Of a stretch of 64,000 nucleotides of DNA, positions 3,575-61,792 are shown in pieces. Location: positions 310,001 to 374,000 of the forward strand of contig JAKMXF010000144.1 in the NCBI GenBank assembly GCA_024704765.1, in the 5' to 3' direction. Below the pieces are notes generated by a model that was given only the letters and a program-made list of their open reading frames with translations, searched no databases and was not told the DNA's origin. Position 1 is the stretch's first letter. Each line of letters starts with the position of its first letter. The DNA comes from Oopsacas minuta. Its lineage: Eukaryota; Animalia; Porifera. A program made the position numbers and the translations under genes.

Positions 3575-3783
3575 TGTGTTAGAGAAGAATTTAGCACTTG
3601 TCACCCTAGTTACCAGTAATTAGTTCAAGTATTCAGCAATTAGTAACGCTATTTTTGAGTTTAGCAATACAGAAATGAAATATACATATACGGTAAGGAG
3701 ACAAAATTACTATTACATTGTGTCTGTGGATTTACAATTATACTAGGGTTACAGCTGTTTATGCTTTCTTTCTTCCTTGCAAT

Positions 3784-3954
3784 CATCACTACTAACCTTT
3801 ACAACTGTTTGCAAATAATGGCGACATATATGTTATGACTTTTCATAAACTGGAGCCATCGGGGATAACGGGGGAATGCAATAGATCTTGTAGACCCCCT
3901 GATGTCCTCCGTGGACCACCAAGGGCCCCATATACCCAAGGTTGACACCCGCTG
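3784..3954 (-). mobile_element. MITE family D (hAT/Charlie-like) copy
   Basis: Minus strand starts CAGCGGGTGTCAACC and contains CCCTTGGTGGTCCACGGA...CAGGGGGT, shared with 16367 and 50024. Right end degenerate. Confidence 0.6.
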
Positions 3955-4763
3955 CAGTAAATAAAATGCTATTTCCCATGAAAATTCAATTCCCTTTTTT
4001 GTCAGCTCATAAACATAATGAGTTTCAAAAATATCCATTTATGTCACTGTTCTAACCCCTAATTTGTCTCTATCATCGCATACACAGGTTGCAGTATATT
4101 CTGTCAGATAGAAGTCCTGTATGTTTGTAATTATGTAATGGGAAACTTGATAATCAATGATTTAATCATATGACACGTTCCATGCATAATTACAGACTCT
4201 TTGTTGACTCAATATTTGCAAAATAGCATCACTACATTATGTGACAGTTCGGACTGTACTATGTATTTACATTGGACATGGTACAGATTCAGATTTCTTC
4301 CAAAAACGAAACCAAATTGTAGAATTATATTTCTTTATAATCGTCGCTACATGATGTTATGTCCCATTCGCACTTTAGCTCTGTTTCATTGATAATTTAC
4401 CATTTCAGGAGCTTCGCTATTAAGAGGAATCATCTTCATAACAAGGGCTACAGCGATTGCAATTAAGTTTCCCTTATTTAGCCGATTAATAAACGAAAGC
4501 CATATTTGTAAATCAAGTGAAATTCCCGGAACCTTCGCTATAGACCGCTGAATCAAGAGAAATCATACAAACTTAATATATTTCGAGAATCCTTTGCAAG
4601 TAGAGGCAAGCAACTACTCTAATTAATTGCAATATCTTACATCTTACATAGTTTATATGTATAAGCCACCTGAGCCAGTATTTAAGCATAGAGCACTACC
4701 TCGTGGTTTGTTTTACATTTAAATTGAACGAATATCCAATTTTTGTTGATCCTTTTTAGAGAA

Positions 4764-7700
4764 ATGACTTCCGTAAGACAAGCAGAAACGTTGAATGGTA
4801 TAGGATTACAAAATGATCAACTGTTCAGAAGTTTGCAAAAACAGCCTTCTGAACGGACCCGCAAGGATTACGATGCGATTGTTGATGCGCTTTTCCAATT
4901 TCCCGCTTTCCAGGGCTGTGAAGTTAAAATGTTATATTCAATTATACCTTGCGCACATTTTGAATTATTAGCGAAAGGTGACGAACTAGGAAAATCGGCT
5001 AAAAAACTAAAACGTAGAATCAGTTTTCAACGCAGTGATCCAAAAGTGAAAGATGGCTCTTTCCGTTCAAATTCGACACGACAGAAACACGAGAGCATTT
5101 GGTATATGTTAGTCTCTGGCAGTATTATCTATGAGTTGGAGAGACTTGAGAAAGGGAGTGTTTTCGAGGTGAGTAAGGAAGCCCTGAAAGGACACAATCA
5201 TCGCTGGGGTAAAAAGAAAGATATGCAGATACCTGTAGCGATAACTAATAGTTCTCTAGTCAGGTTTACTTACCTACCGGAAGAGGTAAAGGAGTCCGGT
5301 CACGCGTACCGATCGTCATTTACCGCCCACTTGGAAAGTATTGAATCTGTTAAGCAAGTCCCGATTGGTAAGAGACTATCAATCTCATATTCTCAAGATT
5401 GTATATACCCCAATTCCGCAGAGCAACGCAGCAGGAATTTGAGTAGTTTGGTTGATCCTAAGTCTCAGTTAACGAACAGCACAGAGAGTGAATTGATACC
5501 AAAAGACCCTCTAATAGTTTATACAGGTCCTAGTCCTCAGAAAAAAATGCTAAGCAACAATTCCGACGGTCTTTTAAGTCCCAGTTTAACGGAGGGTAGT
5601 ACGGGTCATAGTTTCCCATTCGGTGTATCACCCAGTCCGGCATGGCCTAGACACAGTCAGTGTTCAGTTGGCAGTGAATCTGCTCACTCCCAGAACTCTT
5701 CTACTGATTACTCTCTTGGGAGTAACGGTGATAAAGGAAAATCTGATCCTAAACCTCCGTCGATTACAAACGATATGTCATTATTCTCCATAGACAAATT
5801 CCTGCCAGACTTTATAACTGAGACTGTTAGTAAACTGCCACAAGACAGGACTGAAGAAGAGATTTCTAATATTTCAACTTGCCTCAAGAACGCTCCAGCA
5901 TTTACATCATTCTCTGACCCGGTTAGATGGCGGATTTGTTCTAAAATGAGATATAAATCTGTACCGAGTATTGGTATGGTTGTCCTGAAGCAGGGAGAGA
6001 CGGTAGACTGCTGGTATGTGATACTCAGTGGGAGTGTAGAGATGTTTATTGACGGTCAGTCACCTTTCAAGCTACAGATTGGCAGTTCATTCGGTCTAGG
6101 TCCAAAGCTCACCCCACTAACATGTAAGGGTAACATGATGACAGCTGAAGCTAACTGTATATTCGGTTATCTCCCTCTCGAACAACTCAAATCGATCTTG
6201 GAGGAGAACCAGCAGAAACGAGTCACACAATTTGAAGGGGATAAGCCTATATCAGTGCAGGAGCTGAGACAAGGATCTGGCGGGCAGTATGGTTACGTCA
6301 TTCTACAAGCTACCCCTGACATGCTACTCAGTCAGCTGGTGGAGACTAGCATAGATGAGAAGTACATTGAATACTTCCTCCTTACATATCGTGTATTTCT
6401 TCCACAACCTTCTGGCGTATCCTACAGGATAGAGCATTGGTTCTCTACACCCAACCATTCTATTAAAGCTGTACAGGTATTACTCATTTGGCTACGTAAT
6501 CACTATACTGACTTTGAGCACGATAACGAAATGCAGGATTTTCTAGACAAGTTTATACATATGTTGAAGGTGTCGGGTCGTGAGATGGCAGGATATGCTG
6601 ATAGTATTAGGGAGCTACGCGCAATAAAGTCATCCCTCAGATATGTGTCTATGTCCGCACTACACGAGCAGGTCTCTCCTATCGCTATAGGGGGTGGAGC
6701 TGAAATTGGATTTCCTATTCTAGTTACTAAAGTTACAAAGACTCGTCTCTTAAATATTGCATTGCTACAAGGTGATGAGTTGGTTTCTATAAATGGAAAT
6801 TCTTGTACAAACAAAACTTCAAATTGGGCGAGAAAGCTCCTCTTCTCAGGTATAGAATTGGAAGTTGGAGTTAAATATTCTAGAGACACTTTTGATAGGT
6901 TTATGAGTCTCCCGCGCGAATTCCATGTGACAGGATTCAACCCCGGGTACATAACACCTAACGCCATCAGTTCTCCTGACCTCTCCTCTCTCAACTGTGA
7001 ATCTGACTCACAACCCAATTCATCACACAAACGATCTCCAGGTGGTCTTCTAAGACGGAGTTTCAGGTTAAAACCTGCCAGTAGTAATGAAGATAAGTCG
7101 AAGAGTCTGGGTTCTAGCAGTCAGTTAGATAAGCAATACGATAGATTCTTAAAGAGGAGAGGGAGTCTCCCGAAGAACTTTGTTAGCAAATCTCGTAAGA
7201 ATTTCCTCGCTAGACCTGTGAGAAATGAGAGAGCAGCTACTGTCACCCCAGATTCCTCTGTATTCGGAGAAGAGGACTCTGCTTCTAGCTCAAACGAGCG
7301 TCACTCTGACCAGAACTCACGCTATCCATCGGGTACCTATACACTTCGCCCCACACGTGCTAATTCCGGTATAGCGCTCAAGAAACATATTCTTAAGCTA
7401 TACTATGTAGACCATTCATTCCGTTATATACTCATATCTCTACTAACCAGATCCTGTGACGTCATACAATTGGGTTTACAAGAGTATAACGCTGATTCTG
7501 CAACTTTTTACACCTCTCATGAACACCATCATCTCTGCCTAGCAACGGTCGATGCCAATGGAATTGTAAAGACATCTATTCTCCCACCAACTCTATCTAA
7601 TCTCCCATCAAAATACCTTCCCGGCTGTAGATTCTATGTTAAACCGAGTTTTATTGTAGGAAGTATTTGTCATGACGAAGTGGCTAAAGAAATGTTCCAG

Positions 7701-8741: not shown

Positions 8742-10249
8742 ATCCAAATATTTAAGGGTCTATTTTTATCCTATTTTAACTTGGAAATACTTTGAGTTGC
8801 TATAATGTATATTTTGCTATGTATCTCTGCTATAAAATATTCCGTTTGTAATTAATTTTTCACCAACTATATATGTACGTATTTATTGGAATCTCATGTC
8901 CTAGCTATTTAACGGGACAGGAGGTTATATTTTGATGTAGAGTGTTGTGTTAGTCTCATATGCTGAATCGAGGATGATTAGACAACAAAACTAGCTACTG
9001 CTCACCAAATTTAGTTTCTGTGGACACTTATCTTTGCATTTTAATGTCTAAGCCAACACCTGTTGTCATATGAGAGCTTAGTTGCAGATTTATTTCCTTA
9101 CGGTTTATCAAATATTTCATCATAGCCATCGGCTACTAGACTAGACCGTAGGCAGGAAAATCTGGGTACTAACTATATGAAATATTATTATTCATTCTGA
9201 AATCGAATTGCATATTGGCTCTGCGTATGTTATTTTAAACTGTCTATTCATGCAAAGTTTGAACTCTCCATGTCGTGACTTGATGTCCATTTAATTACTT
9301 AACCTACATTTTATCCTAATTTCTAATAGATTAATCATATAACACCTTCTCGCTTGCCCTATTGATAAGCGTTTCTCAAAATGAAAGATTATTAGAGACT
9401 TTAAAAGGCAAATTATGTTAGATAATTACAAACATTGGAATCTGTTAAGGATGTAAGTAAGAGTGTAGCTGAGTATTCAACTTCAGTTTCATCAATTCCT
9501 AATCTTGAATTCGAACTATGAGACGGAAGGCTCCTCATTGTATGGGCATTATCTGCCTCTTTAACTTTGTGTGAGAAATGAAGAGCGATTCTAATAGTTT
9601 GTTTATTGAATTGAGAGAAGCACGTCGTAATCATAAGTTCTTTGGATAATTGTCCAGTTTATTCAAAGATATTTGTATGGACTGAAAATGTCTCATTTGT
9701 GGAATTGTTAGGAGTTCTCTTTCTACTTCAAAAGCTGTCCTGGAACTTTTTCCAAAGTTCTATTAAACTTTTCTTGTTAGTGAATATTGTTATTCTCATT
9801 CAAAGTTTAATTTTCGACAAGTTTTGGACTTCATTCTATTGATAAAGTGTTCAGAATTCCCTCAAGTTCGAAATAAGTTTGTGTAGACGAATAGCTATTA
9901 TAATAATATTGTGTGTTGTTTAATAGACCCTTTAATTATTCTTAAGCCATCAATCAACACATCTATGCCAAGTTGTTCATGTTATAACCTTTTCTAGACT
10001 GTATTATAGACCTATGGCGCTATGTTGTTACCACTTTATTTATATTCAAACTATACCTATTTACAAGAAAGCTTTTTGCTTACTTGTGTTGCGCGGTTCG
10101 CAAGCACTTCGTGTCTGATTCCATTGTATGCTGGCTATAAGAACAACTATTGCTACTCCCAAGGGGGTTCTTATAACCGGCATCCACTGTACATGTATGC
10201 CCTTCATGCTTCATGTTCCAGTTCTGATGCCATTAGCAACATACAACAG

Positions 10250-12282
10250 ATGATCTTACAAAGAGAAATCATACTTGATATACTCCTATTCATTATTTTC
10301 ATGTATGTTGGAAGAACTTATATTTCTGAGGTACGTAGGACTAATGAATTAAGAGAGGAAATGTCGAATGAGATTTTGCTGGGAGTAGATAGACAGGAAT
10401 ATGAGAGTAATGTCAGTAGGGAGGAGGAATTAGCCTTGAAAGTATGTAAAGAAGAGATTCAAAGGAAACGTGCTTACCTTGATAAATGCATTGATTACAA
10501 TGTAAAACAGGAACAATATAAGGAACAGATTGAACTCACTGAAGGAAGGAAGGAAGAAGGTAGTTAAGGATTTGATAATTATAGTCTCTTTATCTAAATT
10601 CCTATTTATAGGTTTACAAGAAATCTTAAAGATAGGACAGTTAGAGTTAGACGAATGCTTTAAGGACAGGTGAGTATAGAGTGTAGGTGGTATACTACAA
10701 CTGACTGTCTACGTAACCTTTCTATTCAACTCCTTTTTTCTTTATGTATATTTGTCCGAGTTGAATAAGAAACTGGCATAATAGCAACAAAATTGATTTT
10801 TCACATGTGTGTGGAATATTATCTTGTAAATTGATTTGTTCTGTCAAATATATGTTTTCCAATCGATTCTGACGCATAACTCTATGAATAATTGTTCTAG
10901 AGGGCACTTTCGGCGGACACGAAGTATCCACGGTTCGCATAGGGCAAGCAAGTGAAGCGTGTTTATTTCAATTATGATTTTTATAGAAATGGTTTGAAGG
11001 ACAAACATCCAGATTGTTTTCCGAAAGTTTCAAAGAGTCCTAATGAAAAGAATATATTCAGAAACAGTTCAGTGAATAAGATAAAATACTTCATACTGTT
11101 CTTAGGACATCCACGGTGTGGTAGCAGTATTATAAAGGCTGTATTAGACGCTCATCCACACGTGATTATAGCTACTGAATCAAATGCTGTACAAATATGG
11201 ACGAATCATGTAAAGAAACAAATTAAATTTGATAGATACGATTTGTTCAATATTCTCAGAAATAGATCTATATTTATAGCAGATAAAATTGGTAGAAATG
11301 TACCCGCAATAGAGAAGTACTATACACTACAGTTGCCGGGTCTGTATATGGGAGAGTACAAGGACTACATACACGTCATTGGAGACAAAGGTAGAGAATT
11401 ATACTAACTGTAAATCCTGGGATAAGTCCCGTAAGCTCATTCAGGGATTTTCTGTATTTTAAAAGATTTACAGTTTGTGTAGTGAATAGATAATTGGGTG
11501 ATATGTAGTTACATTTATTCATATATGAAGCAAACTGTAGCTATTAATAACTACCGTGTAATCTCCACAAACGAGTTACCATGGATGCAGAAAAATGCAA
11601 CCCCCGTTTCCCTGATTCTGCCAAAATCCACGTTTGTGTATGTTCATTTGTATGGGAATAGGAATTCGCTCAATTTATTTTCACTCCGTTTCCAGAGGCC
11701 TCGTTAGTGGAAGTTATACTGTAATTTTATTGCTTCCATTTTATATCTATAGAGGGACTTTTGATGAATATTGATAGAGGTTTTGATGATTCGGAGGAAT
11801 TTTTCCGATTGTTGGATAGATTCCAGAGTTTCGTCGGCTATCCTCTCAAATTTTTTTACATCGTCCGGAATCCCTACGATCTCATAGCAACCATGTACCT
11901 CTATTCTATTTCCGCAGAATTACGGCAAGAACTGTTTACGAATAATAGAACATTAAAGTCAACTCAAAGTCTAAGTAACATGGTTAGAAATCACGTAGCT
12001 TCTTTCAAGAAGCTACAAAGACACATAAACCACTACGGAGAAAGATTACTGACTCTATATAACGAAGATCTGATCTCAAATCCTAAACTGTTCATTAGAA
12101 GAATGTGTAATCACATGGGAATATACTGTAACGATTATTATATAGAAAAAACCTCTGCGAAAGCGTTCTCTAGCGTTACAAGGAGTAGATACAGTGTAGA
12201 ATGGAAACAAGACGCAAAGAACCTTGTAGATACTGCTATTAGGAATTATCCATTTCTAAACAGATATTCATTTGAAGATTGA
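10250..12282 (+). CDS. Type II membrane sulfotransferase (TPST/Sulfotransfer_3-like) with coiled-coil stem
   Basis: Exons 10250(or 10022)-10559, 10612-10669, 10987-11390, 11753-12282, all GT-AG and in phase. TM IILDILLFIIFMYVG; 5'-PSB loop GHPRCGSS; 3'-PB motif YIVRNPYDLIATM. Confidence 0.8.
11554..11721. mobile_element. MITE family B in sulfotransferase intron 3
   Basis: TA-flanked TIRs CCGTGTAATCTCCACAAACGAG / CTCGTTAGTGGAAGTTATACTG; internal TAGGAATTCGCTCAATTTAT-TTCACTCCGTTTCCA shared with 52063-52206. Confidence 0.75.
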
Positions 12283-12532
12283 ATTTTGTATATATAGCAC
12301 TATGGATTTGTAGATTTTCATATACCTCTTATCTCTTATTATATCTGTTATATTTTGTACATCAAACTCACTTATTTGTTTGTTGTTTGTTTGTTTATTT
12401 GTTTGCATATTTGTATATATTTGTAGTTTATTTATTGATGAATTGAGTTAGCATATGGCATATGTACAGAATTATTAATTTGGTATAACATTTCCTTGTT
12501 TTGACAAAGTATAGAAATATATTTGACGTCAC

Positions 12533-15454
12533 ATGAGTCAGCTGTTCTCTCCCTACCATGCAATTGGCTTGTACAGTCAAGATATTCCATTCTCAGTCCT
12601 CTCCAGCGGAAATCAGCAATTACTCGCTACTGCCATAGACGAATCCTTTCATTTATATTCTCTAAGAGATCTACAGCTGATGTTTGTGGGATATGTTGAT
12701 GGTAAGAGTGAAGACTCTGAATCTAATTATATACAGAGTATGCTCTTCCATAACGGGAGACTGTACATAGCACAAGGTGATAATATCCGTGTGTGGAATA
12801 ACGGCCGTATTATGCAAAGCCACCGGACTGAATTCCCTGCTAGCTTGCTCTTGGGGTGTGGAAAGAGGATGTTATCTGTAGAAGAAGGATCTGTCAGAGT
12901 ATGGGAGTGTGAAAATGAGGATAGATTAGGTGAAGAATATCTCCAGATAGAATTTGATTCATCTATCTTCAAGATAACATCCATAGTCCATCCTACTACA
13001 TATGTTAACAAGGTTTGTCAATGATTTATTTTGCTACTAACAATTCTTATTATTAAATACGTAGGTGCTATTCGGGAGTCACCAGGGATCGTTACAATTA
13101 TGGAATATTTGTAAGAACATTCTAGTCTATGAGTTCAGAGGCTGGAGCTCTCCTGTCCTTGCTCTGGAGCAATCTCCATCTCTTGACGTCATAGCTATAG
13201 GACTGATGGATGGGACTATACACTTACATGACATAAAGTTTGACCAACCGGTGCTCCGCTTCTCACAGGATTCTCCAGTAACTTGTCTCAGTTTCAGACA
13301 GGACGGAGAGTCTGTACTCGTGTCAGGTAGCAAAGAAGGTCAGCTATCTGTGTGGGACCTGGAGAAGGAGAGATTGAAAGGAGTTGTGTGTGATGCTCAC
13401 CTAGGGTCAGTGATATCTCTATCATTCATTGGAGCACGAGAAGTAGCTGTATCCGCTAGCAACGATAACACCATAAAGGTATGTATGTATTTATATTGGT
13501 AGTGGTATTTTAGTATATTCTATAGATGTGGGTGTTTGATGAGCCTGATGGCCTCCCTCGTCTGTTGAGATCCAGATCCGGACACGCCGCTCCTCCCTCG
13601 CGTATCCGGTTCTTCTCCCCAGGGGGTCTTGCTCTCCTTTCTGCCTCACAGGACGGGACCTTCCGTCTCTTCTCATTGGTCAGATCCTCTTCAGTGGAGT
13701 TGTCACAGGGTCACACCCTCAGTCAGTCGCGTAAGAAAGGTGTGAGTATTGAGAGTCTGAGACTTCCTGCTATTACAGAATTCTCAGTAGAGATGTCACG
13801 AGCTGATGACTGGGACTGTATAGCTAGTGTACATTCCAATCTACCATGGATACAGACTTGGCATTTATTCAGGAAATCTGTTGGACAACATAGAATCAAA
13901 TCACCACATAATCCTCAAATAATACCTACATGTGTATGCTCTAGTCCGTGTGGGAATTACATAGTCGTTGGAGATAGCTCTGGACATGTAGAGCTGTTTA
14001 ATATACAATCTGGACAACATAGAGGTTGTTACGCGAGAGAAGAAGGAGTAGGAGCTCATAACGGTGACGTCAGAGGGGTGGCAATCAATTCCACCTGTAG
14101 TGTACTGTTCTCCCTGGGTACAGATGGGGTACTAAGATTCTGGAATCTGACAAGACACGAATTGGTCTGGCAGCTCCCTTTTAAGATGACAGCATCCCGG
14201 CTAATATTACACAGGTATATATACGTCTTCATAACAATTTGTATTACAGAATTATTTGTATTTCTTCTGTAGAGATTCTGGCCTCATTGCAATAGTTTTA
14301 GATGATTTCTCTATCCAGATAGTAGATGCAGATAATCATAAAGTAGTTAGGACATTCCATACGACCAGTCAAACAACAGACCTTGTATTCTCTCCAGATG
14401 CTCGCTGGCTAATCGTCAGTCTATTCGACTCAACAATTCGTGTCTGGGACATTCCTACTGGTAGAATGATCGACTGTTTTAGAGTGGGATCCCTTGTTAC
14501 GTCCCTAGCTATATCTCCTACAGGAGAGGCACTAGCAACTGCCCATGCAGATAGTCCTGGAGTGTATCTCTGGAGCAATAGGACTCTGTATGGAAGAGTT
14601 TCTCTCAAGGCGATAGATGAACTAGCGCCTATTCCTGCTATCCAGCTGCCTAGGAGCATTCCTGAGGAGGGAAGTGGTTGCCTGGTTGAAGAAGGAGTGA
14701 CTAGTGAGAATAGATTAGATGGAATGGAAGAAATGGATTATGGAGAGTACTGTAGTCCCAATATATTAGGTAAGCTAATCAACTGTTATTAGTCGAACGT
14801 GTTTATTGTACTATTGACTGCTAATTGTATTTAGATGCAGAACTACTTAGCTTAGCTGGTCTCTCCCGTTCCCACTGGTATTCTCTATCGAAGTTAGATA
14901 TTATAAAGGAACGAAATAAACCCACAGACCCTCTAGCTAAGCCTAAGCTCGCTCCTTTCTTCCTACCCACTCAAGCTGATACTAAATCATTCAGTTTCTT
15001 AACATCAGAAAATGGAGATAGTAGTGAAACGAAATCAAGAGTTATGACACGACATACTCAAGAGAAGAGTACCTTCCTTACTCTACTAACATCCTGTAAT
15101 AAATCAGGGGACTATTCTAACTATATAAATCTTATTAAAGAGATGGGCCCAGCTGCTATCGACGTTGAAATCCGTCTACTAGGACCAGACATAGGAGGTA
15201 GCGTTGAAGAATTGGATACATTTCTAGATTTCCTACTCAAATCTCTGGAAATGAAAACTAACTACGAGCTAGTTCAGGCACTTATGGATGTATTTCTCCG
15301 TGTACATAGTTCTGAGTTGATGAAACACGGAGATATCCTTGGTTCAAAGACAGAGCGATTATGTGATTTACAGGAGAATAGTTGGTCAGAGGCTGCTAAC
15401 CTGATGAGGTTCAGTTTGTGTTTGATCGAGCTTTTTAAAAAGCCGACTCTTTGA
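12533..15454 (+). CDS. WDR36: WD repeat protein 36 / Utp21 (SSU processome)
   Basis: Exons 12533-13012, 13065-13478, 13526-14214, 14273-14769, 14835-15454; introns 52, 47, 58, 65 nt. N-term SQLFSPYHAIG, HPTTYVNK, C-terminal Utp21 domain (IKERNKP...APFFLPT). Confidence 0.93.
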
Positions 15455-51080: not shown

Positions 51081-51971
51081 CTACATTTCTTTAGTAAGAG
51101 TTTGTAATGAGTTAGTGTAGAATTTAGGTTTGCATTCAGAGGCAGGTTTAGCAAGCTCCTTGTCCAGCTGTTCTCTACTTGTTACCCCAGAGAGTGTCAG
51201 AACTGTTTTTAACCCATTTCTATTCCCGAATGCGATATCAGTTCCCAATCTATCTCCTACCATTACTGTTCTATCTTGATCAATATTTGCCATGCTCTTT
51301 AGACATTCAAATATAGGAGAGTGTGGCTTCCCGATAACTACAGGTTCCCTCTGACTCACAAACTTAACGGCTTCTAGCAAACTCCCAGACCCCGGCAATA
51401 TAACCTTAGTACCAGTTGGCAGTATATTATCCTCATTAGTAGCTATGAATTTACAATTAGGATCTGAGAGATAGGTAGCAGCTAGTGTCATTTTCTTGTA
51501 ATTGAAATATTCGTCAAATCCCACGATTACGCCTGTTATATCAGGATCTAAAGGAATACTGCTCCAAGCGTCCAGCTCACCAGAGGTCAAATCAGGCCCC
51601 ACCTTCGAGGTGTTAATCCCGAGCTCATTTAGTTCCTGTTTGAACCCGGGCCTGCCCATTAAGTAAGCCTTTCCTTCGAAATTTAGAACATTCTTCATGT
51701 AGTATCCCGTTGCGAAGGCAGTGCATATTATCTGTTCGAATTCAACCGGGTATCCAAGTGTAGTGAATTTCTTTACATACTCAACACGGGATTTTGTGCT
51801 ATTATTAGTAACAAAGAATATTCTCTTGTTACGGGATTTTAGATAAGTTATAGCCTCAACACCTCCTGGAATTATGGTGTTACCTTCCCATAGAACTCCG
51901 TCACAATCGAATAGGAAATTGTCAATATTAGAGATCAGTAGTTCCCAATCTTTACCATTTAAAAGCTCCAT
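51081..51971 (-). CDS. PGP: HAD-IIA phosphatase (phosphoglycolate/glycerol-3-phosphate phosphatase, PGP/PDXP-like); single exon
   Basis: FLFDCDGVLW (DxD), VTNNSTKSR, IGKP, MVGDRLGTDI. Confidence 0.9.
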   Translation of the reverse strand: MELLNGKDWELLISNIDNFLFDCDGVLWEGNTIIPGGVEAITYLKSRNKRIFFVTNNSTKSRVEYVKKFTTLGYPVEFEQIICTAFATGYYMKNVLNFEGKAYLMGRPGFKQELNELGINTSKVGPDLTSGELDAWSSIPLDPDITGVIVGFDEYFNYKKMTLAATYLSDPNCKFIATNEDNILPTGTKVILPGSGSLLEAVKFVSQREPVVIGKPHSPIFECLKSMANIDQDRTVMVGDRLGTDIAFGNRNGLKTVLTLSGVTSREQLDKELAKPASECKPKFYTNSLQTLTKEM

Positions 51972-52062
51972 AGAAAACTAACAAATCTGTGTAACAGAAA
52001 TTTAGTTATTTTCATTCATTAATATTTGTATAAGCTTGGACAAATTCCCGTGATTCATATTA

Positions 52063-52206
52063 CAGTGTAACCCCCAAAAAGGAGGTGACAGGAACGTCAA
52101 AAATGCTCCCCCGCGGCCCGTTTGTGGAGGTTGATTTATTTGGGACTAGGAATTCGCTCAATTTATCTTCACTCCGTTTCCACAGGCCTGTTTGTGGAGT
52201 ACATTG
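52063..52206. mobile_element. MITE family B between the PGP and NPEPPS start codons
   Basis: TA-CAGTGTAACCCCCAAAAA ... TTTGTGGAGTACATTG-TA; internal block shared with 11554-11721. Confidence 0.72.
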
Positions 52207-52235
52207 TAATCGAATTAATTCTCCTAATTAGTAAA

Positions 52236-55200
52236 ATGGCTGCGGTAGAGAAGAAACCTTTTCAACGTCTACCCACAAAGGTTATACCTAAGAATTACGA
52301 CCTACACATAACACCTGATCTAACTGCTCTCACATTCCTGGGTAAGGTATCCGTTACTGTGACAGTTAAGGAACAGACTAACGTCATCAAACTAAACTCA
52401 GTTGACATAAAGGTGTCAACATGCCACTTTAAATCTGCAAGTGGCACACTAGAGGGTAAAGTGGAATATGACGAAACAGCTGAGACGATAAGTGTTATAT
52501 TCACTCAACAGCTGGCCATAGGAGAAGGTAGCCTCCTACTGGAGTATGCTGGGAACCTTAATGACCTCATGAAAGGATTCTATAGGTAATTATAATCATG
52601 ACGTCACTGTACTATCTTATAGTGTATTATATTTACAGGTCAAAATACACCACCCCTTCAGGAGAGGAGAGATACGCGGGTGTGACTCAATTCGAACCTA
52701 CTGACGCTAGGAGGGCCTTACCCTGTTGGGATGAACCAGCCCTGAAGGCCACTTTTGATGTAACACTATGTGTCCCCAAGGACAGGACTGCCCTCTCTAA
52801 CATGCCAGAAAAATCTGTGAAAGATCTCGGAGATAAACGCGAAATTGTATTTGAGAGAACTCCAATAATGTCTACATACCTATTGGCATTCATCGTTGGT
52901 AAGCTAGTCGCTATCCTATAGTTCTATACAATAGTTTAACATATTTGTGCAGGTGAATATGAGTTCGTAGAAGAGAAGGATAAATACGGAGTGCTACACA
53001 GAGTATACACACCGCTCGGTAAGAAAGAACAGGGAAAATGGGCTCTAGAGGTCTCTGTAAAAGCTCTCACGTTCTACAGAGAATATTTTGACATTCCATA
53101 TCCTCTATTAAAGATGGATCTTATCGCTATAGCTGATTTCGCAGCAGGAGCAATGGAAAATTGGGGACTAGTAACCTATAGAGAAAGACTCTTGCTTATC
53201 GATCCTCTCCAGTCCTCTCTCATGACCAAGAGACGAGTAGCACTCGTGGTGGCTCATGAATTGGCTCATCAGTGGTTCGGCAATCTGGTGACAATGGAAT
53301 GGTGGACACATTTATGGCTGAATGAAGGATTCGCTACTTTTATGCAATACCACTTCACACATATTGCTTACCCTGAGTATGATATATGGACCCTATTCGT
53401 AGATGAGACCCTTTCCTCTGCCCTCGCTCTAGATGGGATGGCATCTAGTCACCCAATAGAGGTTCCCGTAGGACACCCTTCAGAAATAGATGAGATATTC
53501 GATATAATATCCTACCACAAAGGATCGTCTGTTCTTAGAATGCTACATGATTATATTGGTGATGATGACTTCAAGAAGGGACTGAATCAATACCTGACGA
53601 AGTATAGCTACAAGAATGCAGAGACAGAAGATCTCTGGGCTAGTTTAGAGAAAGCTTCTGGCAAGCCAATTCAAAAAGTGAGTTATTTCCCTGCTTATGT
53701 AGTACAGTCAACTCCCATTATATCGAATACCCGCTTATATAGAAGTCTGAAATTGTATAAATTTGGTCCCAAGCCGTCAAAGTAACATAAATTCAATCGG
53801 TTTTATCGAACTCCGCTTATAGTAATTATCGCGGTCCCTTGAGCTTGGATATGACGAGAGTTGCCTGTAGTAATTTTATTCGTAAACACAAAAAACTAAA
53901 TATCCTTCTCAGCTTTTCTCTTTTGCTGTTGCTTCCTTATCCATTGTCTGTAGTCACTCAGTGTATAAATCTTCTCTCCATGGTAGTCATCCTCCCAGGA
54001 CTGTTGAGTAGTCCCCTTGAATCTGTAGGCAGCTATTCTCTGCATGAGATCTTTGTCTCTCTGTGAGAGCTCCTTTGATATTTCGGGGTGAGTTAGATGC
54101 CATATGGCAGAAGTTCCATGATTCATTGCCAGGTAACCAATCAGGAGCGAAGATATGCCTCCCATTCCCAATATGATAAGTGGGTCTATTCCTAGAATAG
54201 GCTTAACTTCCTCCTGAGACATCGTGAATAGATCTGGTTGATATCGAATGAACATTTCGATAAACCCATACATTGACACTATCCCACCCAGCATTCCCAT
54301 GCCTAAATCACGCCATTTCATACGCCTACGAATAGACCTGTATTCCTTGAATGTCAGAGCGAACGGAGGCTTGCTTGTGGGGTTATTGGGTGTGGAGGAG
54401 AGGGATCGCTTGTTGTATGGATTATGGTTGTATGACGTCAGTCTGAGGGAGGTAGTGCTTAGCATGCGGTAAGCCATTCTAATACTAAAGTACACAGTGG
54501 AACCCCGTTAATAAGAACACCAACGGAAGTGATATTGTAGAGACGTAATATGTGAAAATATTTGTTCATCTTATCCCAGAAATTCGTATATTAACGAGTT
54601 CCATTGTATACTGTATTAGAGAAGTATGGAAACCATTTACATCACATTTAAATAAGCTTACGCGCACTAATAAATGAATTAAAATGGCTTCCTTTTGAAA
54701 ATATTATTAGCGGACATAATCATTACAAATATGTCTGTGAGAATTTTCGCAATATTTTAATCTCTTCTAATTAGAGCAAGTTTGTAATAAAGTACATATG
54801 ATAAAGATCTGTTAATATGACCTCATAGCTCATAGAAAAATTTTGCGGAATGTTTTCACTAATTTACCCCTTTTGATCCCAACAGACAGGTCATAGGCTT
54901 TGGACAGGTTTATTTTATTTAAATAAGTTTGAATTTTTTATTTATTGGAAGAATAATTTTAATTCAGAAACACAGATTAAATATTCGCTGAATCCATAAG
55001 AGATTTCTGTTTGTTTGGGAGATTTGATTTGATTTATTAGTTGCGACTGAGGATACTAGCCATATGGTTGTTTCCCTGGATACGGAATCTCTGTAAGGAA
55101 TTCTGTCTCTTTGATAAAATAGAGTCTTCTTCCCATCGCTTGCTCCCTTGTCGCACCAAATACTGATATGTCCTACCTGTGAATCTGAATTTTGAGCCTC

Positions 55201-58200
55201 TTTTTAGAAAGCTCAGCTTTTTAGGAGGTAACATAGTTTTGCTGCATCGAAAAAATCCATGATGCTCAATACAAATCTTCCAAACCTTAGAAATAATAAA
55301 TATAAGCATATTTGTTCACTGATGGTTGCTATGCTAATAATTACCTGTTTGGCTATTCTCTTATTCTCCAGTTTGAATACTATAATATCTCTATGACCAT
55401 CTCCGTCACTATGTAATCGTGATAAAATCGGCACTAGATGGATCAATAGTTTATTTTTCCTGTATTCTATACGAGATATTCGTAGCCATGGGATCTCGTG
55501 TAGTTTTATGAAGTTCGGCCATTCTCCTGTGTAGGTCGTTATACCCTTGCTGGAAATACCAACTAATAACGGAGGACCTGAAAGGATAGGTAATAATTCA
55601 AATAGAAGATTGATTAGAAATACTTTGACCATAATAATGTCTATTCCGCTAATCTCTACATATATCACTTATTCTATAGTTCATGTAATCGCTGACTCTT
55701 TAGAGATTACAGAGACAAATTTATACTTAGTGTACGAACTGATTAACAACCGCCTCCCTCTCTAGGAATGTGGTTAAATCAGTTTATACATAAATTCACA
55801 CATTGTACAAAAAGGTTCTGGTAACATGCTTGTATCAGCCTTGTGGTTAATTTATACGATTACTTTATGGATAAATCATTACCTCCAGATTGAACCATAG
55901 AAAAATGGATGCCATAGTATTGTAGCCTAGTAGCTCTGTCTAAAAATAGCTCGTCAGTCTCTGCTGGAGTTAAAGTCTTCTGTTCTTGATGTAATGTCCT
56001 GACATAACCCAGAATTGTGCTATCTTGATTCTGTAGTAGAGATAGCTTCTCTAGATAATCTAATGGACATACATAATGTAAACCCTTGGACTTGGACATG
56101 ATATATGATACAATGAACTTCCATATCCTGTTTTTGTGACTTTAAGTTATGCCCATTTTCATAGTTAGCTCGTTGGCATTCGGTTACACTCCTTAGCAAG
56201 GGAGGAGATTGCCGAGATGAATTTCTTAAATATAATTATTTGCTGACAATCAAAAATTAGTGAGTAACTAGTGACAAAAACGTAGATCATTTAGAGTATG
56301 TTGTCGGTATACGTATAATACCATGTCTGTTACACGTATAATCAAGCAATCACCAAATATGCTAATTTGTTTATTCCTTAATTGTTCTTCATGCTCCATT
56401 CCATATGGTATACTGTTTATGAGATATTCTCCAACAATTATCTGTTATTGTTAGACGTAATAATAAACTAGAAATTAGAGCTACACTCTATAGATATGAT
56501 CATAGAAAGGTCAGGTATTCTGAGATTGTACAGAATTAAGTAAATTTTGGTCAAATATGCGAAAGAACCTATTTGAGATATATTACATGAATAATTAAGT
56601 TGTATCTTACCAGTGTTAGGGTGTTCCTCTTCATTAAAGTCTCCTATCTCTGCCTGGGCTATGAGACTAGCCAGATAGACGGCGCTAGCAAAACTACAGG
56701 GCAGCTGTCCAGAGAACACATCTTGTCTTAGCTGTAATACTAAATAGTAACGTGTTATCTCATTGAAGATCTGCCGACTGTCTGGCGGGAACAATTTTAC
56801 CTATAATTAACATGAATTAATATATCCAAAAACGTATCTAATTACACTGCCAAGTGCATTAGAAATACAATTCAAATTGGATGAGAGTTATTTGTGTATC
56901 TTAAAAGTGTAAAATATTAATTACCTTGAGTGTGAATACGTAAACTTTATCGTTCGCCTTTTTATTAAAGTCAATTTGTTTCCTCAGAAGTTTGTTTGGT
57001 TCGATCCACTGACTCAATTCATTCGTAACAGTCAATAAACCGAAAAAATCGCATTCTTCGATCCCAAGAAACATGAAAACTCTTCTCAACAAATCTTGTC
57101 CCTTTGCATCATAATCTACTTGTGTTGTATATTCCTGACCCTCGTAATAATCGATTCGACATTTAATCTGTGTCTTTAAAGATTGATTACTCAAAATATC
57201 TGATCTACTTTTAAAACTCATATTAATCTTATTCAAATAATTATTGCAATAATTCAAAGCTTTTATATAAATCATTGGTATATTGCGTAGACACTTTTGT
57301 ATATGATTCTAGTCCACATTACTAGCAAGTCAATACACGCTATTGATAATGCGTATAATTCAAGCTAAGTACTCGACAGGATTCGATTCGATTAAAACAG
57401 CCATAAAGTCATTTCAAAGGTTCCTTATGAGTGTTTGCATTTTTAGGTGATGCCGTCATGGACTAGACAGATGGGCTATCCTGTTATTTCTATCTCAGCT
57501 AACGGAGATGGTGACGATCTGTTGATTGATGTTTCACAGAGAAAGTTCAATTTGGATGGTACAGAATCTGATCCAAAGGACCAATGGGTTGTACCTATTG
57601 GTGTGGCGACAGATACAAATCCTATCGTATGTAAGTTCTTACTCGACACTCCCAAATCCCAGCAGAGACTGAAAAATGTGGTTAAAGAGGCGAATCATGT
57701 CAAATTGAATCCTAATCACAACGGATTTTATAGAGTTAGTTACTCTGAAGGAACATTTGAAAGGATCCTACAGGACCTGCTTAAAATGAGTCCGTCTGAC
57801 CGTCTGGGAGTCTTGAATGATCAGATGGCGTTGGCTAGAGGGGCGATAGCTAACACGACACAATGTCTAGACCTGATTAAAGTGATTGGGAGTCAAGAGG
57901 AGAATTATGTCGTATGGGCGGCGGTGGATAAATCGGTGGGGACATTCGAGGCAATATTCGAACAGCTGGGACAGAAAAAAGAGTTCAGTAAATTCGTGCA
58001 GGAACTTTATGATAGAATATACAAGAGTTTAGGATTCGATGCAAAGGAGGGAGAGAGCATTCTCAATTCTATGCTCAGGCCTCTCGTATTGAGCCGTCTG
58101 GGTAAACACGGACATTCTGAAGTACTCGCTAAATTCAGGTTAGTCATGACTCGATAAATTTGGCGTTTTGAATCCACTGGTTTAGCGCCTTATTCGCAAT

Positions 58201-59320
58201 TTGTAAAACGTTATTTAACATATTAATAATACATAGTTACGGTTCCAGATTCTACAAAGTCGACATTTGATTGAACCCAATTAACCTAGCAGTATTTATT
58301 GTTATGATTGCCACTAAAATGCTATATTGCTAATTATATGCAACAGTCTTAATACATTAATTCTTCATGATATAAATCAGCTGATTAGCAACAAGATTCT
58401 CTCTTATCTCCAAAACTGGCCTGAAATAATGTAAATTCCAATTGGTTACTAGGCTATTAATAATTTATATTATTAACTCACTATTATGATTATAATGTGC
58501 TATTGTAACAGAGTACAGTCACGTAAATACGTAGTCCTTCCCTCTAAAGAGTACCGCCTACGGTAGTAATATGATAAGTTAATTGTAAGGATATACTCTA
58601 CAATAGTTTGGCCGTATCATTTCAAATTAATCACTACGTCCTAACCTAACGAAACAATTAATTTTGCTATAGAAACTCAAAAGTTTGAACCATAGTAACA
58701 CTGATATCCTTATTGATATCAAATATCATACAAAACAATTCATTTCATATAGAGAGAAGTTTCAGCATCACTGCTCAGGAGCTGCTCCCATTCAAGCAGA
58801 CCTTAGAGCTTGTATATACTCAGCTATAGCTAGACATGGTGGAGAGGAGGCTTACAGTAATCTTATCAAGCTATACGAAGCTGGAGATTTAGCAGAAGAG
58901 AGGGTAAGATTATTGCAATGTGCTTCACAAACTGGAGATCGCTCTCTACTCTTAAGATTACTTGACTACTCAAGAAGTGATAAAGTACGTCATCAAGATC
59001 TGGTCAGTGTTCTATGGGGAGGTAGTGACACTCAAGAGGGTCTAAGCGTCTGTTATGACTACTTAAAGAGTAACTATCAATGGTACTACGATAATTTCAA
59101 AGGGATATTCCTAATGTCTTCTATCATTGGAGCATGCACTGGAGGATTCATGACATTAGAGAGAGCGGATGATGTAAAAAAATTCTTCGACTCTCACCCC
59201 TGCGAGGGTGCAGAGAGGAAAGTTCTACAAAGCATAGAGCAGATACAAATACGAGCTAAATGGGTGGAGAGAGACGGTGATAAGATGAAGGAATGGTTAG
59301 CTGGTCAGGGAAGCAAGTGA
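52236..59320 (+). CDS. NPEPPS: Puromycin-sensitive aminopeptidase (M1 family)
   Basis: Exons 52236-52585, 52639-52898, 52953-53677, 57447-58138, 58753-59320, phases consistent. QFEPTDARRALPCWDEP, GAMENWG, HELAHQWFGNLVTMEWWTHLWLNEG; exon 3/4 join gives KPIQK-VMPSWTRQMGYP. Confidence 0.95.
53705..53867. mobile_element. MITE family A in NPEPPS intron 3
   Basis: TA-CAGTCAACTCCCATTATATCGAA ... GAGAGTTGCCTG-TA. Confidence 0.85.
53896..54477 (-). CDS. PAM17: Pam17-like mitochondrial import motor subunit, nested antisense in NPEPPS intron 3
   Basis: Arg/Ser/Thr-rich, acid-free N-terminus; LTFKEYRSIRRR; two TM segments separated by ILGIDPLII; DDYHGEKIYTLSDYRQWIRK, compared with yeast Pam17 DYYGEKIGSLKEYKQWLRD (recalled). 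Confidence 0.85.
   Translation of the reverse strand: MAYRMLSTTSLRLTSYNHNPYNKRSLSSTPNNPTSKPPFALTFKEYRSIRRRMKWRDLGMGMLGGIVSMYGFIEMFIRYQPDLFTMSQEEVKPILGIDPLIILGMGGISSLLIGYLAMNHGTSAIWHLTHPEISKELSQRDKDLMQRIAAYRFKGTTQQSWEDDYHGEKIYTLSDYRQWIRKQQQKRKAEKDI
54495..54606. mobile_element. MITE family C just upstream of PAM17
   Basis: TIRs CAGTGGAACCCCGTTAATA / TATTAACGAGTTCCATTG-TA. Confidence 0.72.
55037..57221 (-). CDS. FERM + FERM-adjacent domain protein (band 4.1/FRMD3-5-like), nested antisense in NPEPPS intron 3
   Basis: Exons 57221-56925, 56800-56611, 56059-55883, 55577-55345, 55285-55037, in phase. ECDFFGL, VKLFPPD...TRYYLVLQLRQD, LQYYGIH, WLRISRIEYRK, VWKICIEHHGFFR, GSKFRFTGRT. Confidence 0.87.
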
Positions 59321-59634
59321 GTGCTGTAGAATTATTTAGTAGAGTTTGTTTGTTAGTTTTGATAGAATTCGTATTTCGAGTTTATTAGTAGCTGAGTTTG
59401 TTACAGGAATGAATCCACTAGCCTTATAATTAGAATCAATTAGAATAAATATCTATTACCCTTATTCGTATCTATGTTACTGCAGTAGGGTGGTGAATAG
59501 TTCTTGTGTATTATGTGTAGATAAAATAAGTGTTATATGCCATACAAACAAACAAACAACAGAGAGTAACTAGATAATCTGAGGTCACAAATCAAAGAAT
59601 TTTAATGTATTTGTATGCGAAAATAAAATAGAGT

Positions 59635-60756
<1,122 letters not shown>

Positions 60757-61090
60757 CTAAAAAACTTTTTAGGTCAAATTACTTACGCCACCTGCATCGT
60801 GTATAATTACAAATATTTGGTATAATTAATAGAAATTAGCAAGGGTTAGTCTATCAGGTAAACTTGATGAATGCCAATTGTAAGACAATCAAAGGAAGGA
60901 ATTCAACTTTCTTATTTCAGTTATTATCACCATACCAATGATGATGCAATCTGATTGCGTTTCACAATAGAGAACATCCATATGGTTATTTTAATCAAAA
61001 TATTGACACCTGTATGTATTGTCAATATAATCAGTATATTTCAAAATAATTAATAAACAACAATATACTACTAATTAGAATTGATAAACT

Positions 61091-61792
61091 TCAATCACAA
61101 TCATCTAAGTCTAGTCCTCCTAAATCTTGAAACAAGGACTCATCAATTTCTACTGCCGGTTCATCCAAGTCCTCTCCGTCCGCATCTTCAAAGAATTGAA
61201 TATCAGATAGAAATAATTTCTCATCTCTCTCAAATAACTGTCTACCTGTCAGTTTCGCTGGATCTATTTCAGATTTCTTTTTAATATTTAAATCTGTTAT
61301 CTCTGCTAGGAACTCTTTATTCCATTCCATAAACGTTTCCACCGTAACCATGGTACCATAGATCTCAGCTGGCGCCTCCTCTTTCGTAGTACAATCCCCT
61401 TCAGAGAGATCCGTAACCCTCCCCAAGGCATCAGACAGTATCTGCTGTATTTCACTACACACATCATATATCATAACCTGACCAGTATAGTTAGCTAGGA
61501 GTGTCTCCATTGCGTTACTGATACTATTAACAACATCCTCTGGTGTAGAGTATGCAGATCGGAGCTCGTACAAGGGAGGAACGAATGGGTATGCAGGTTT
61601 GTATGTGAATTGAATTATCAGTCCGTAACGACCAGCATTACTATACTCGTCTACTTCATCTAGTTCTGAGGTGAGTTTTATCTCAAAAGTGTTTTCATCT
61701 AAATTGGTGAACTCGTCTGAGGAATAAATGCATTTTAGAGTTTCTATTTCTCCTTCTTGCTCAAGCCTGCAGGTGTCAATATCCACTGCCAT
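61091..61792 (-). CDS. RWDD1: RWD domain-containing protein 1 (DFRP2); single exon
   Basis: EQEGEIETLKCIY, YPFVPP, GQVMIY, YGTMVTVETFMEW, LTGRQLFE, VEIDESLFQDL. Confidence 0.92.
   Translation of the reverse strand: MAVDIDTCRLEQEGEIETLKCIYSSDEFTNLDENTFEIKLTSELDEVDEYSNAGRYGLIIQFTYKPAYPFVPPLYELRSAYSTPEDVVNSISNAMETLLANYTGQVMIYDVCSEIQQILSDALGRVTDLSEGDCTTKEEAPAEIYGTMVTVETFMEWNKEFLAEITDLNIKKKSEIDPAKLTGRQLFERDEKLFLSDIQFFEDADGEDLDEPAVEIDESLFQDLGGLDLDDCD

Follow-up and report, generated by a model that had tools for sequence, protein, structure and literature searches.

A probable Pam17 orthologue nested in an aminopeptidase intron of the glass sponge Oopsacas minuta

Pam17 (Fmp18) of Saccharomyces cerevisiae is a subunit of the presequence translocase-associated motor that contains two transmembrane domains, with both termini located in the matrix (PMC8346121). 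The protein has been called 'yeast-specific' (PMC8346121) and 'fungal' (PMC7050145), as the preliminary description of the locus presented here also stated, and humans operate TIM23/PAM without it (table in PMC8346121). In yeast, Pam17 is non-essential, with a role described as 'yet to be clearly defined' (PMC5773037). Public databases already contain Pam17 orthologues from several unicellular holozoans and, among sponges, from two homoscleromorphs; these copies are not discussed in searchable papers. In the searchable literature, no paper linking Pam17 to choanoflagellates and no experimental study of a unicellular-holozoan Pam17 was found, and Pam17 and sponges appear together only in incidental co-mentions. 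The Oopsacas genome paper (PMC10280926) never mentions Pam17 or TIM23, and the main text of Fukasawa et al. 2017 contains no mention of Pam17.

The window, i.e., the whole 64,000-nucleotide stretch of O. minuta DNA analyzed, contains an open reading frame at 53896-54477 that had been proposed as a Pam17 homologue and that proves to be a real gene on the minus strand. Its intronless coding sequence (53899..54477, 193 amino acids, single exon) starts with the ATG at 54477 and is followed by a TAG stop at 53896-53898. This ATG was chosen over an upstream GTG at 54495, given in the mechanical list of reading frames, because three orthologues begin at the equivalent ATG with the N-termini MAYR, MAFR, and MVFR. 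On the same strand, 16 nt past the stop, the hexamer AATAAA (53875..53880) may serve as the polyadenylation signal. The match to the Pfam family PF08566 (Pam17), a check set beforehand as decisive, far exceeds the cut-off (E 3.1e-31, 108.9 bits versus 25.4), and aligns profile positions 6-163 (158 of 165) to residues 28-190. A six-frame search of the genome with the same profile gave an agreeing score of 108.6 bits, and a single copy was found in the whole assembly (61.46 Mb, 365 contigs). The sponge protein and S. cerevisiae Pam17 thus belong to the same family, are alike in size (about 190-200 amino acids), and share a layout in which a presequence-like N-terminus is followed by two predicted membrane helices and then by a domain carrying the C-terminal signature D-Y-x-G-E-K-I...Y-R-x-W. 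Other libraries added little, since the NCBIfam scan returned no match, as expected from a prokaryote-centered collection, and the ESM Atlas structure search returned only unrelated bacterial proteins with TM scores below 0.4; the ESM Atlas feature search, in turn, retrieved nine fungal Pam17 clusters. No solved Pam17 structure was found for comparison, as the PDB yielded nothing in either a sequence-profile search or a Foldseek search with the AF2 model (E <=0.001).

All the sequence motifs listed in the preliminary description are found in the protein, including L-T-F-K-E-Y-R-S-I-R. The N-terminus (codons 1-44, 54346..54477, minus strand) contains no acidic residues, six Lys or Arg, and 13 Ser or Thr, and its residues 1-30 are disordered in the AF2 model (pLDDT 45-53). 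This composition fits a mitochondrial presequence, and R24-S25-L26|S27 fits the R-3 cleavage motif and may be the site of the matrix processing peptidase. The first hydrophobic helix (codons 58-79, 54241..54306, minus strand) follows the basic segment LTFKEYRSIRRRMKWR, and the second is encoded together with the G-x-D-P motif by codons 96-122 (54112..54192, minus strand). Two transmembrane segments, as expected in the Pam17 family, are indicated both by hydropathy, with peaks centered near residues 68 and 105, a maximum of 2.0 in the second helix, and hydrophobic spans at about 58-79 and 99-122, and by the AF2 model (pLDDT 84, pTM 0.71), with long helices at 43-79 and 99-129 (pLDDT >90) and further helices on the predicted matrix side. 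The G-I-D-P sequence (residues 96-99) indeed exists; however, it opens the second helix rather than forming the linker between helices to which it had been assigned. By analogy with the yeast protein, both ends would face the matrix, where the C-terminal signature D-D-Y-H-G-E-K-I...D-Y-R-Q-W-I-R (codons 163-181, 53935..53991, minus strand) is predicted to lie in a domain. In an alignment of 30 sequences that includes the window protein, P99, R152, D164, G167, Y176, and W179 are invariant, while G96, D98, and R177 are conserved in at least 90%. The residues kept family-wide (G-x-D-P and D-[YF]-x-G-[ED]-x-[IV]...Y-R-x-W) are all retained.

The gene lies antisense within an intron of an NPEPPS-like M1 aminopeptidase, which confirms the intronless and nested arrangement reported earlier. 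This GT..AG intron (53678..57446, plus strand, phase 0, 3769 nt) has its donor, aaaaag|gtgagt, at 53677/53678 and its acceptor, ttttag|, at 57446, and the exon translations meet across it as ...GKPIQK|VMPSWTRQMGYPV. The exon upstream (52991..53677, plus strand) encodes the Peptidase_M1 catalytic domain (PF01433, E 4.3e-88), and that downstream (57447..58157, plus strand) the start of ERAP1_C (PF11838, E 8.8e-34). A FERM gene with several exons and FERM_N and FERM_C domains (55037..57275, minus strand) occupies the same intron upstream of Pam17, in the same antisense orientation. The metazoan context that had been noted is borne out by these two genes together with a CHD6-9-type helicase, a laminin-EGF protein, and an ADCY10-like cyclase. 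Moreover, the order HAD hydrolase, Peptidase_M1, [Pam17, FERM], ERAP1_C, and kinase is common to three other assemblies, whose Pam17 proteins are 53-66% identical to that of the window, and an RWD gene past the kinase falls within the examined stretch in two of these three. Pam17 and the FERM gene have been nested in the aminopeptidase intron since before the four sampled glass-sponge species split.

Many associated organisms live in sponges, and a gene free of introns could be regarded either as fungal or protist contamination of the assembly or as a dead retrocopy with a frame open by chance. Such an artefact is, however, extremely improbable, in line with the earlier judgment that contamination was unlikely. 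A sponge gene on a 796-kb contig harbors Pam17 in one of its introns, and the same nesting recurs in the other three assemblies. Pam17 DNA was found in four runs of one sample, straight-through contigs cover the gene in two DNA runs, and a separate study of another organism includes a run with DNA of ~94% identity. Furthermore, comparison of the window gene with its orthologues gave saturated pS values (0.69-0.83) against a pN of 0.19-0.30 and, therefore, a dN/dS of at most 0.10-0.19. The N-terminus (codons 1-44) evolves faster than the rest of the protein (pN 0.38-0.51 versus 0.14-0.25), and the mature part is under strong purifying selection, which excludes a pseudogene or functionless retrocopy. 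The nesting, the synteny, and a dN/dS not exceeding 0.2 together refute the artefactual origin, and RNA contigs over the reading frame also speak against it.

These contigs come from a sequencing run that was treated as RNA because contigs of the FERM gene show spliced CT..AC joints (55283/55343, 55575/55881, and 56796/56921). Contigs identical to the Pam17 reading frame reach a summed depth of 2300-5300, compared with about 30-230 in the rest of the intron, although these are assembled contigs that give neither strand nor ends, and their depth is a poor measure. The depth of the RNA contigs also climbs at the aminopeptidase exon 57447..58157. Intronic pre-mRNA of a highly expressed host gene was considered as the source of this coverage and discarded, since the rest of the intron has a summed depth more than 10-fold lower. 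The expression check proposed in the preliminary description yields a gene that is apparently transcribed.

Regarding the origin of the gene, the preliminary description had left the choice between an ancestral opisthokont gene and a horizontal acquisition, and the phylogeny it proposed, with fungi, ichthyosporeans, choanoflagellates, and sponges, favors the former and disfavors the latter. Contigs behind two rows of the tree carry the accessions ERZ27293408, ERR6349663, ERR4691637, and ERZ25073822, and the glass-sponge-like sources include ERZ25069837, ERZ25072730, and ERZ20067936. The maximum-likelihood tree separates Fungi from Holozoa with a support of 100/99 and places the window protein in a clade whose species-named members are all Holozoa (11 of 11), comprising two homoscleromorph sponges, choanoflagellates, ichthyosporeans, Pigoraptor, and Corallochytrium. 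The sequence signature follows the same split, since the window protein carries D-D-[YF] rather than P-D-[YF], and D-D-[YF] is found in all seven hexactinellid-like rows, in 23 of the 28 remaining holozoan rows, and in none of the 30 fungal rows. Fungal Pam17 proteins have P-D-[YF]-Y-G where the sponge protein has D-D-Y-H-G, with a longer loop ahead of this C-terminal motif, and the fungal alignment rows are 21-29% identical to the window protein; likeness to yeast was judged through the family and these fungal rows. The sister group of the homoscleromorph sequences is a clade of 12 rows, with Logan and JGI contigs among its sources, that is possibly, but not necessarily, animal.

The homoscleromorph proteins, one from Corticium candelabrum (LOC134189770, XP_062514126.1, annotated as 'uncharacterized protein') and the other from Oscarella pearsei (EukProt P003658), have 199-215 amino acids, belong to the same Holozoa clade, and share D-D-Y with the window protein, to which the Oscarella sequence shows an identity of about 32-33%. 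Unlike the O. minuta gene, that of C. candelabrum, located on a chromosome-scale record, contains two introns and is flanked by genes for PGK, a C12 peptidase, and a RabGAP; its neighborhood differs and, therefore, no synteny is shared with the window locus. Among protists, the Sphaeroforma arctica protein XP_014154443.1, named PAM17 in UniRef, belongs to the same family and clade, and the Pam17 proteins of Salpingoeca spp., Microstomoeca, Pigoraptor, Corallochytrium, and Chromosphaera share family, clade, and motif set. For the unicellular holozoans, identity to the window protein is 22-27% in the aligned rows and 23-32% over the matched stretches.

Acquisition by a glass-sponge ancestor from a fungus or another eukaryote, with the intronless gene in a foreign intron as the trace of the insertion, could draw on the long branch of the glass-sponge clade (stem 0.83), on its grouping in the maximum-likelihood tree with the long-branched ichthyosporean Chromosphaera and not with the homoscleromorph sponges, and on an AU test that does not reject its placement beside all fungi (p 0.105). 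However, the AU test does not reject a single clade of glass-sponge Pam17 and the other sponge rows either (p 0.29), whereas it rejects the placement of the window protein with crown fungi (p 0.00037). The position within Holozoa and the D-D-Y signature likewise oppose a fungal donor, the gene is also present in other sponges and unicellular holozoans, with two introns in Corticium, and intronless genes are common in the compact Oopsacas genome. Horizontal acquisition is, thus, very unlikely, and ancestral retention is the better-backed origin on the basis of these sequence comparisons.

Retention from an ancestor is also the origin assumed in the main interpretation of the locus, i.e., that the window gene is a vertically inherited, functional Pam17 orthologue in a hexactinellid sponge, to which we assign a probability of roughly 0.8. 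By homology with yeast, the sponge protein would be made in the cytosol, imported by means of its basic N-terminal presequence, and inserted in the inner membrane of the mitochondrion as a hairpin of two helices that leaves both termini in the matrix. [quoted passage not shown] The location in mitochondria, the membrane topology, the binding to TIM23, and the role in the motor are, thus, predictions drawn from the yeast system. The same genome contains two Tim44-family matches, four Tim17-family genes, and Tim21. Alternatively, a true orthologue might have changed its job and operate as an inner-membrane hairpin outside the TIM23/PAM motor, e.g., with altered animal motor partners. The operation of TIM23/PAM without Pam17 in animals such as humans, its non-essential and loosely defined role in yeast, and the long stem of the glass-sponge clade are compatible with such a change. 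A complex prediction that paired residues 1-150 of the reading frame for the sponge's own Tim17 with Pam17 residues 38-193 returned 'no answer' with a score of 0.00, which lends no support to the interaction but counts neither for nor against binding. Nevertheless, a change of function is rather unlikely, as all the family-wide invariant residues are retained, the mature part is under purifying selection (pN 0.14-0.25 with saturated pS), no extra domain has been gained, and the genes of the import machinery are present.

The closest relatives of the window protein occur in other sponges and in the unicellular kin of animals and, therefore, Pam17 would be old, with a probable loss in many animals, humans among them. 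The ancestor shared by fungi and animals would already have had Pam17, as would the earliest animals, and the gene would have been kept by unicellular holozoans and at least two classes of sponges but lost toward many other animals, including humans. Profile searches found no species-named Pam17 from cnidarians, ctenophores, placozoans, demosponges, calcareous sponges, or bilaterians. The earlier caution that novelty would diminish if orthologues were already widespread outside bilaterians, thus, holds in part, since orthologues from sponges and protists are in the databases, but none was identifiable in other animal phyla. It is possible, albeit doubtful, that only sponges (at least Hexactinellida and Homoscleromorpha) keep Pam17 among animals as a working TIM23 motor subunit. 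If so, the first animals would have possessed a 'fungal-type' motor, and Pam17 would have disappeared in the line or lines of descent to all the remaining animals. Pam17 would then constitute a rare discrete presence/absence character bearing on early animal branching and would also be relevant to how humans arrived at a motor without it.

The advance consists of a wider range for a known family, unremarked copies of which were already in sequence databases, rather than of a new mechanism. It corrects the textbook-level statement that Pam17 is a yeast or fungal peculiarity. The distribution of Pam17 points to an age of at least the opisthokont ancestor, a place in the import motor when animals first arose, and a later loss within animals. 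It also gives a date to an architectural change of the TIM23/PAM motor. Sponge Pam17, finally, offers natural material to ask what the role of Pam17 is and what replaced it after its loss.

The minus-strand reading frame of the sponge Pam17 gene (53899-54477), as read from the ORF list and the raw sequence, starts at 54495 (GTG) or 54477 (ATG) and ends in a TAG codon at 53896-53898, encoding 193 residues from the ATG, and an AATAAA hexamer on the same strand (53875-53880) begins 16 nt past the stop. In a Pfam-A scan, this ORF is a significant match to PF08566 (Pam17): the E-value is 3.1e-31, the score of 108.9 bits exceeds the gathering threshold of 25.4, and residues 28-190 align with profile positions 6-163 of 165. 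The genome has no other PF08566 match. The sole other Pfam-A match, Octopine_DH (E 0.13), lies far under its cut-off. The translation contains every element of the Pam17 layout listed in the preliminary description, namely a presequence-like N-terminus (residues 1-44, with no D/E, 6 K/R and 13 S/T), the motif L-T-F-K-E-Y-R-S-I-R, two hydrophobic stretches, G-I-D-P (residues 96-99) and D-D-Y-H-G-E-K-I-Y-T-L-S-D-Y-R-Q-W-I-R (residues 163-181). Moreover, an alignment of 30 diverse family members shows no variation at P99, R152, D164, G167, Y176 and W179. The AlphaFold2 model built on this alignment is confident (pLDDT 84.3, pTM 0.71). In it, the N-terminus is disordered, a short loop joins helix 43-79 to helix 99-129, and two more helices follow at 131-151 and 173-192. 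The modelled fold fits the published arrangement of Pam17, which crosses the membrane twice and has both termini in the matrix (PMC8346121). By every sequence-level criterion tested, the sponge protein belongs to the Pam17 family.

The source assembly comprises 61,460,524 bases in 365 contigs (the window being C144:310001-374000, with 38.6% G+C), and the glass sponge genome of Oopsacas minuta was published as 365 scaffolds of about 61 Mb with 36% G+C (PMC10280926). The genomic context is that of an animal, since the products of large ORFs in the window are a CHD6-9-type helicase, a laminin-EGF protein, an ADCY10-like cyclase, a RasGEF, an ENGase and a cyclic-nucleotide-binding protein. On the plus strand, an aminopeptidase exon carrying the Peptidase_M1 domain (E 4.3e-88) ends at 53677, and ERAP1_C exons (Pfam) follow from 57447 onward. 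The splice sites (donor aaaaag|gtgagt, acceptor ttttag|) and the joined exon translation, ...GKPIQK|VMPSWTRQMGYPV, whose junction resembles the matching stretch of puromycin-sensitive aminopeptidase, define a host intron at 53678-57446 and, therefore, Pam17 and a multi-exon FERM gene are both nested antisense within it. Neighbouring genes encode a HAD hydrolase (51084-51971), a protein kinase (59638-60732) and an RWD protein (61094-61792). An interspersed repeat of about 160 bp (53700-53860), which looks like a SINE- or MITE-type element, separates the aminopeptidase exon from the 3' end of Pam17: a search of the sponge genome gave 970 first-look candidates, of which 40 were scored, with full-length copies 77-84% identical on many contigs, and in all runs examined its depth is 50-100 times that of the flanking sequence, with many loose ends.

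A word search recovered seven relatives, each on a long ENA or Logan contig, that are 55-78% identical, and the loci of three were compared, namely L002 (ERZ25069837, 985-kb contig), L003 (ERZ25072730, 1.16 Mb) and L008 (ERZ20067936, 1.67 Mb). In all three, the HAD hydrolase is followed by the Peptidase_M1 exons, then by Pam17 and FERM on the opposite strand, and then by the ERAP1_C exons and the protein kinase; the RWD gene (RWD/DFRP protein) beyond the kinase falls within the examined stretch of L002 and L003 only. The nesting inside a host-gene intron and the same nested order in three other assemblies rule out contamination, and the animal neighbours bear out the metazoan setting proposed earlier. 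The order of this block of about 11 kb (51084-61792) is kept in four glass-sponge-like assemblies despite only 53-66% Pam17 protein identity. Among these four coding sequences, pS is saturated over the whole CDS (0.69-0.83; 0.59-0.78 in the N-terminal 48 alignment columns and 0.67-0.89 in the mature part), while pN is 0.19-0.30 (0.38-0.51 and 0.14-0.25, respectively). The low pN and the whole-CDS dN/dS of 0.10-0.19, where computable, rule out a dead copy. The faster evolution of the N-terminus is the pattern that a cleaved presequence would show. In L002, the first set is followed by second copies of Peptidase_M1, of Peptidase_M1_N and of a Hydrolase_6 fragment (12017-14894), which points to a tandem duplication of the local aminopeptidase/hydrolase pair; the window has no such duplication.

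Five public sequencing runs (X1-X5) contain the locus. In X1 and X3, single contigs run unbroken across 53823-57900, as DNA does. X4, from the same sample, behaves as RNA, since its FERM-gene contigs omit 59, 305 and 124 bases bounded by CT..AC, the mark of GT..AG introns on the minus strand. Its contigs are identical to the window across the Pam17 ORF (e.g., 53823-53965 and 53979-54121), so that the gene is covered by RNA-like sequence. Summed depth, a weak measure taken from contigs that carry neither strand nor ends, is 2300-5300 on the Pam17 ORF, about 30-230 on the rest of the host intron, and as much as about 120,000 on the aminopeptidase exons; this excess over the rest of the intron argues for Pam17 having its own transcript rather than being covered as intronic pre-mRNA. 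One spliced FERM contig in X4 (54457-56060) passes the FERM stop (55037) and reaches 21 nt inside the Pam17 CDS and, thus, the FERM 3' UTR or read-through overlaps the 5' end of Pam17. The two genes, 560 bp apart on the same strand, might share transcription. X5, from another study (2024) under another organism label, covers 52000-57900, including the Pam17 ORF, at about 94-95% nucleotide identity, its source being either closely related to the sponge of the window or a divergent population of that species.

An exhaustive phmmer search of 1.84 billion representatives yielded 180 matches at E 0.001 or better; among the matches listed, the best is the glass-sponge-like P0008 (54%) and the next are 29-37% identical. 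Names were obtained by cluster look-ups for part of the 150 matches listed, many matches coming from environmental or SRA assemblies. On the holozoan side, these include the sponges Oscarella pearsei and Corticium candelabrum (XP_062514126.1, 'uncharacterized protein LOC134189770'), Sphaeroforma arctica (PAM17 in UniRef), Chromosphaera perkinsii, Corallochytrium and Pigoraptor chileana, as well as Salpingoeca macrocollata, S. helianthica, S. infusionum and Microstomoeca roanoka, and on the fungal side Paraphysoderma, Entomophthora muscae and an Auriculariales species. No demosponge, calcareous sponge, ctenophore, placozoan, cnidarian or bilaterian Pam17 is among the named matches listed. In Corticium, Pam17 is carried on a chromosome record of 8.2 Mb, has two introns and has neighbours that differ from those of the glass-sponge locus and, therefore, is a normal resident animal gene. 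Its exons occupy about 10001-10283, 11491-11628 and 12579-12767 of the locus (L009 10001-12770), and one of its two RefSeq isoforms appears to continue past exon 1.

An IQ-TREE phylogeny (65 rows, 214 columns, LG+C20+F+G4 with PMSF; excluding fragments shorter than 170 aa and three long-branched sequences, P0035, P0077 and P0131) separates 30 fungal from 35 holozoan rows, ichthyosporeans, choanoflagellates and other sponges included, with support of 100/99. The window Pam17 clusters with six glass-sponge-like rows (100/98) on the holozoan side; the nearest neighbour of this clade is the long-branched Chromosphaera, a placement that we distrust. The split agrees with a discrete character, the residue that precedes the invariant Asp in the C-terminal motif, which is Asp in 7/7 glass-sponge-like, 23/28 other holozoan and 0/30 fungal rows, and Pro in 22/30 fungal rows. 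The preliminary description had left ancestral retention and horizontal acquisition side by side. In AU tests, grouping the glass-sponge clade with 21 crown-fungal rows is rejected (lnL difference 48.0, p-AU 0.00037), which excludes transfer from a crown fungus. Grouping with all fungi (18.2, p-AU 0.105) or with homoscleromorph sponges and their 12 sister rows (6.8, p-AU 0.29) is not rejected, and, with 214 alignment columns, a very old transfer from a stem lineage is unlikely rather than formally rejected. The best reading of the tree, the AU tests and the Asp signature is vertical inheritance since the opisthokont ancestor, other animals having lost the gene later, and the earlier interpretation is thereby supported and narrowed to ancestral retention.

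In yeast, Pam17 is a non-essential inner-membrane protein that cross-links to loop 1 of Tim17 and works at an early step of import into the matrix (PMC5773037). On the matrix side, the N-terminus of Tim50 recruits Pam17 to start motor assembly on TIM23, and Pam17 departs on arrival of a sorting signal (PMC8346121). The sponge genome encodes two Tim44-family matches, Tim21 and four Tim17-family members, one of them a clear Tim17. The Tim17 frame (L005 1252-1875, G000:C233) does not stop at the end of the conserved domain but continues beyond '...EMTFQQ' into sequence of low complexity, which looks like read-through into an intron, the real gene probably having a further exon. Complex prediction for sponge Pam17 and Tim17 returned no answer. 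Given the known yeast role and these partner genes, we infer the same role by homology: the sponge protein would be imported via its presequence, insert into the membrane as a hairpin, dock on Tim17/Tim23/Tim50 and support the Tim44-Pam16-Pam18-Hsp70 motor.

As the preliminary description held, Pam17 is usually described as 'fungal' (PMC7050145) or 'yeast-specific' (PMC8346121), and a table of import components shows no human counterpart (PMC8346121); the widest range given in the literature searched is 'found in opisthokonts' (PMC3097184). In the searchable literature, Pam17 is not mentioned together with choanoflagellates, and its co-mentions with sponges are incidental. Sponge copies already stand in databases (RefSeq, EukProt), as do copies from unicellular holozoans, one of which carries the automatic name PAM17, so that this is a range extension and not a new system. 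The caveat on novelty thus applies in part, through two homoscleromorph sponges and several unicellular holozoans; no other animal phylum is named among the matches listed. What is new here is the host of Pam17, an animal, and the finding corrects the common statement that Pam17 is yeast-specific or fungal.
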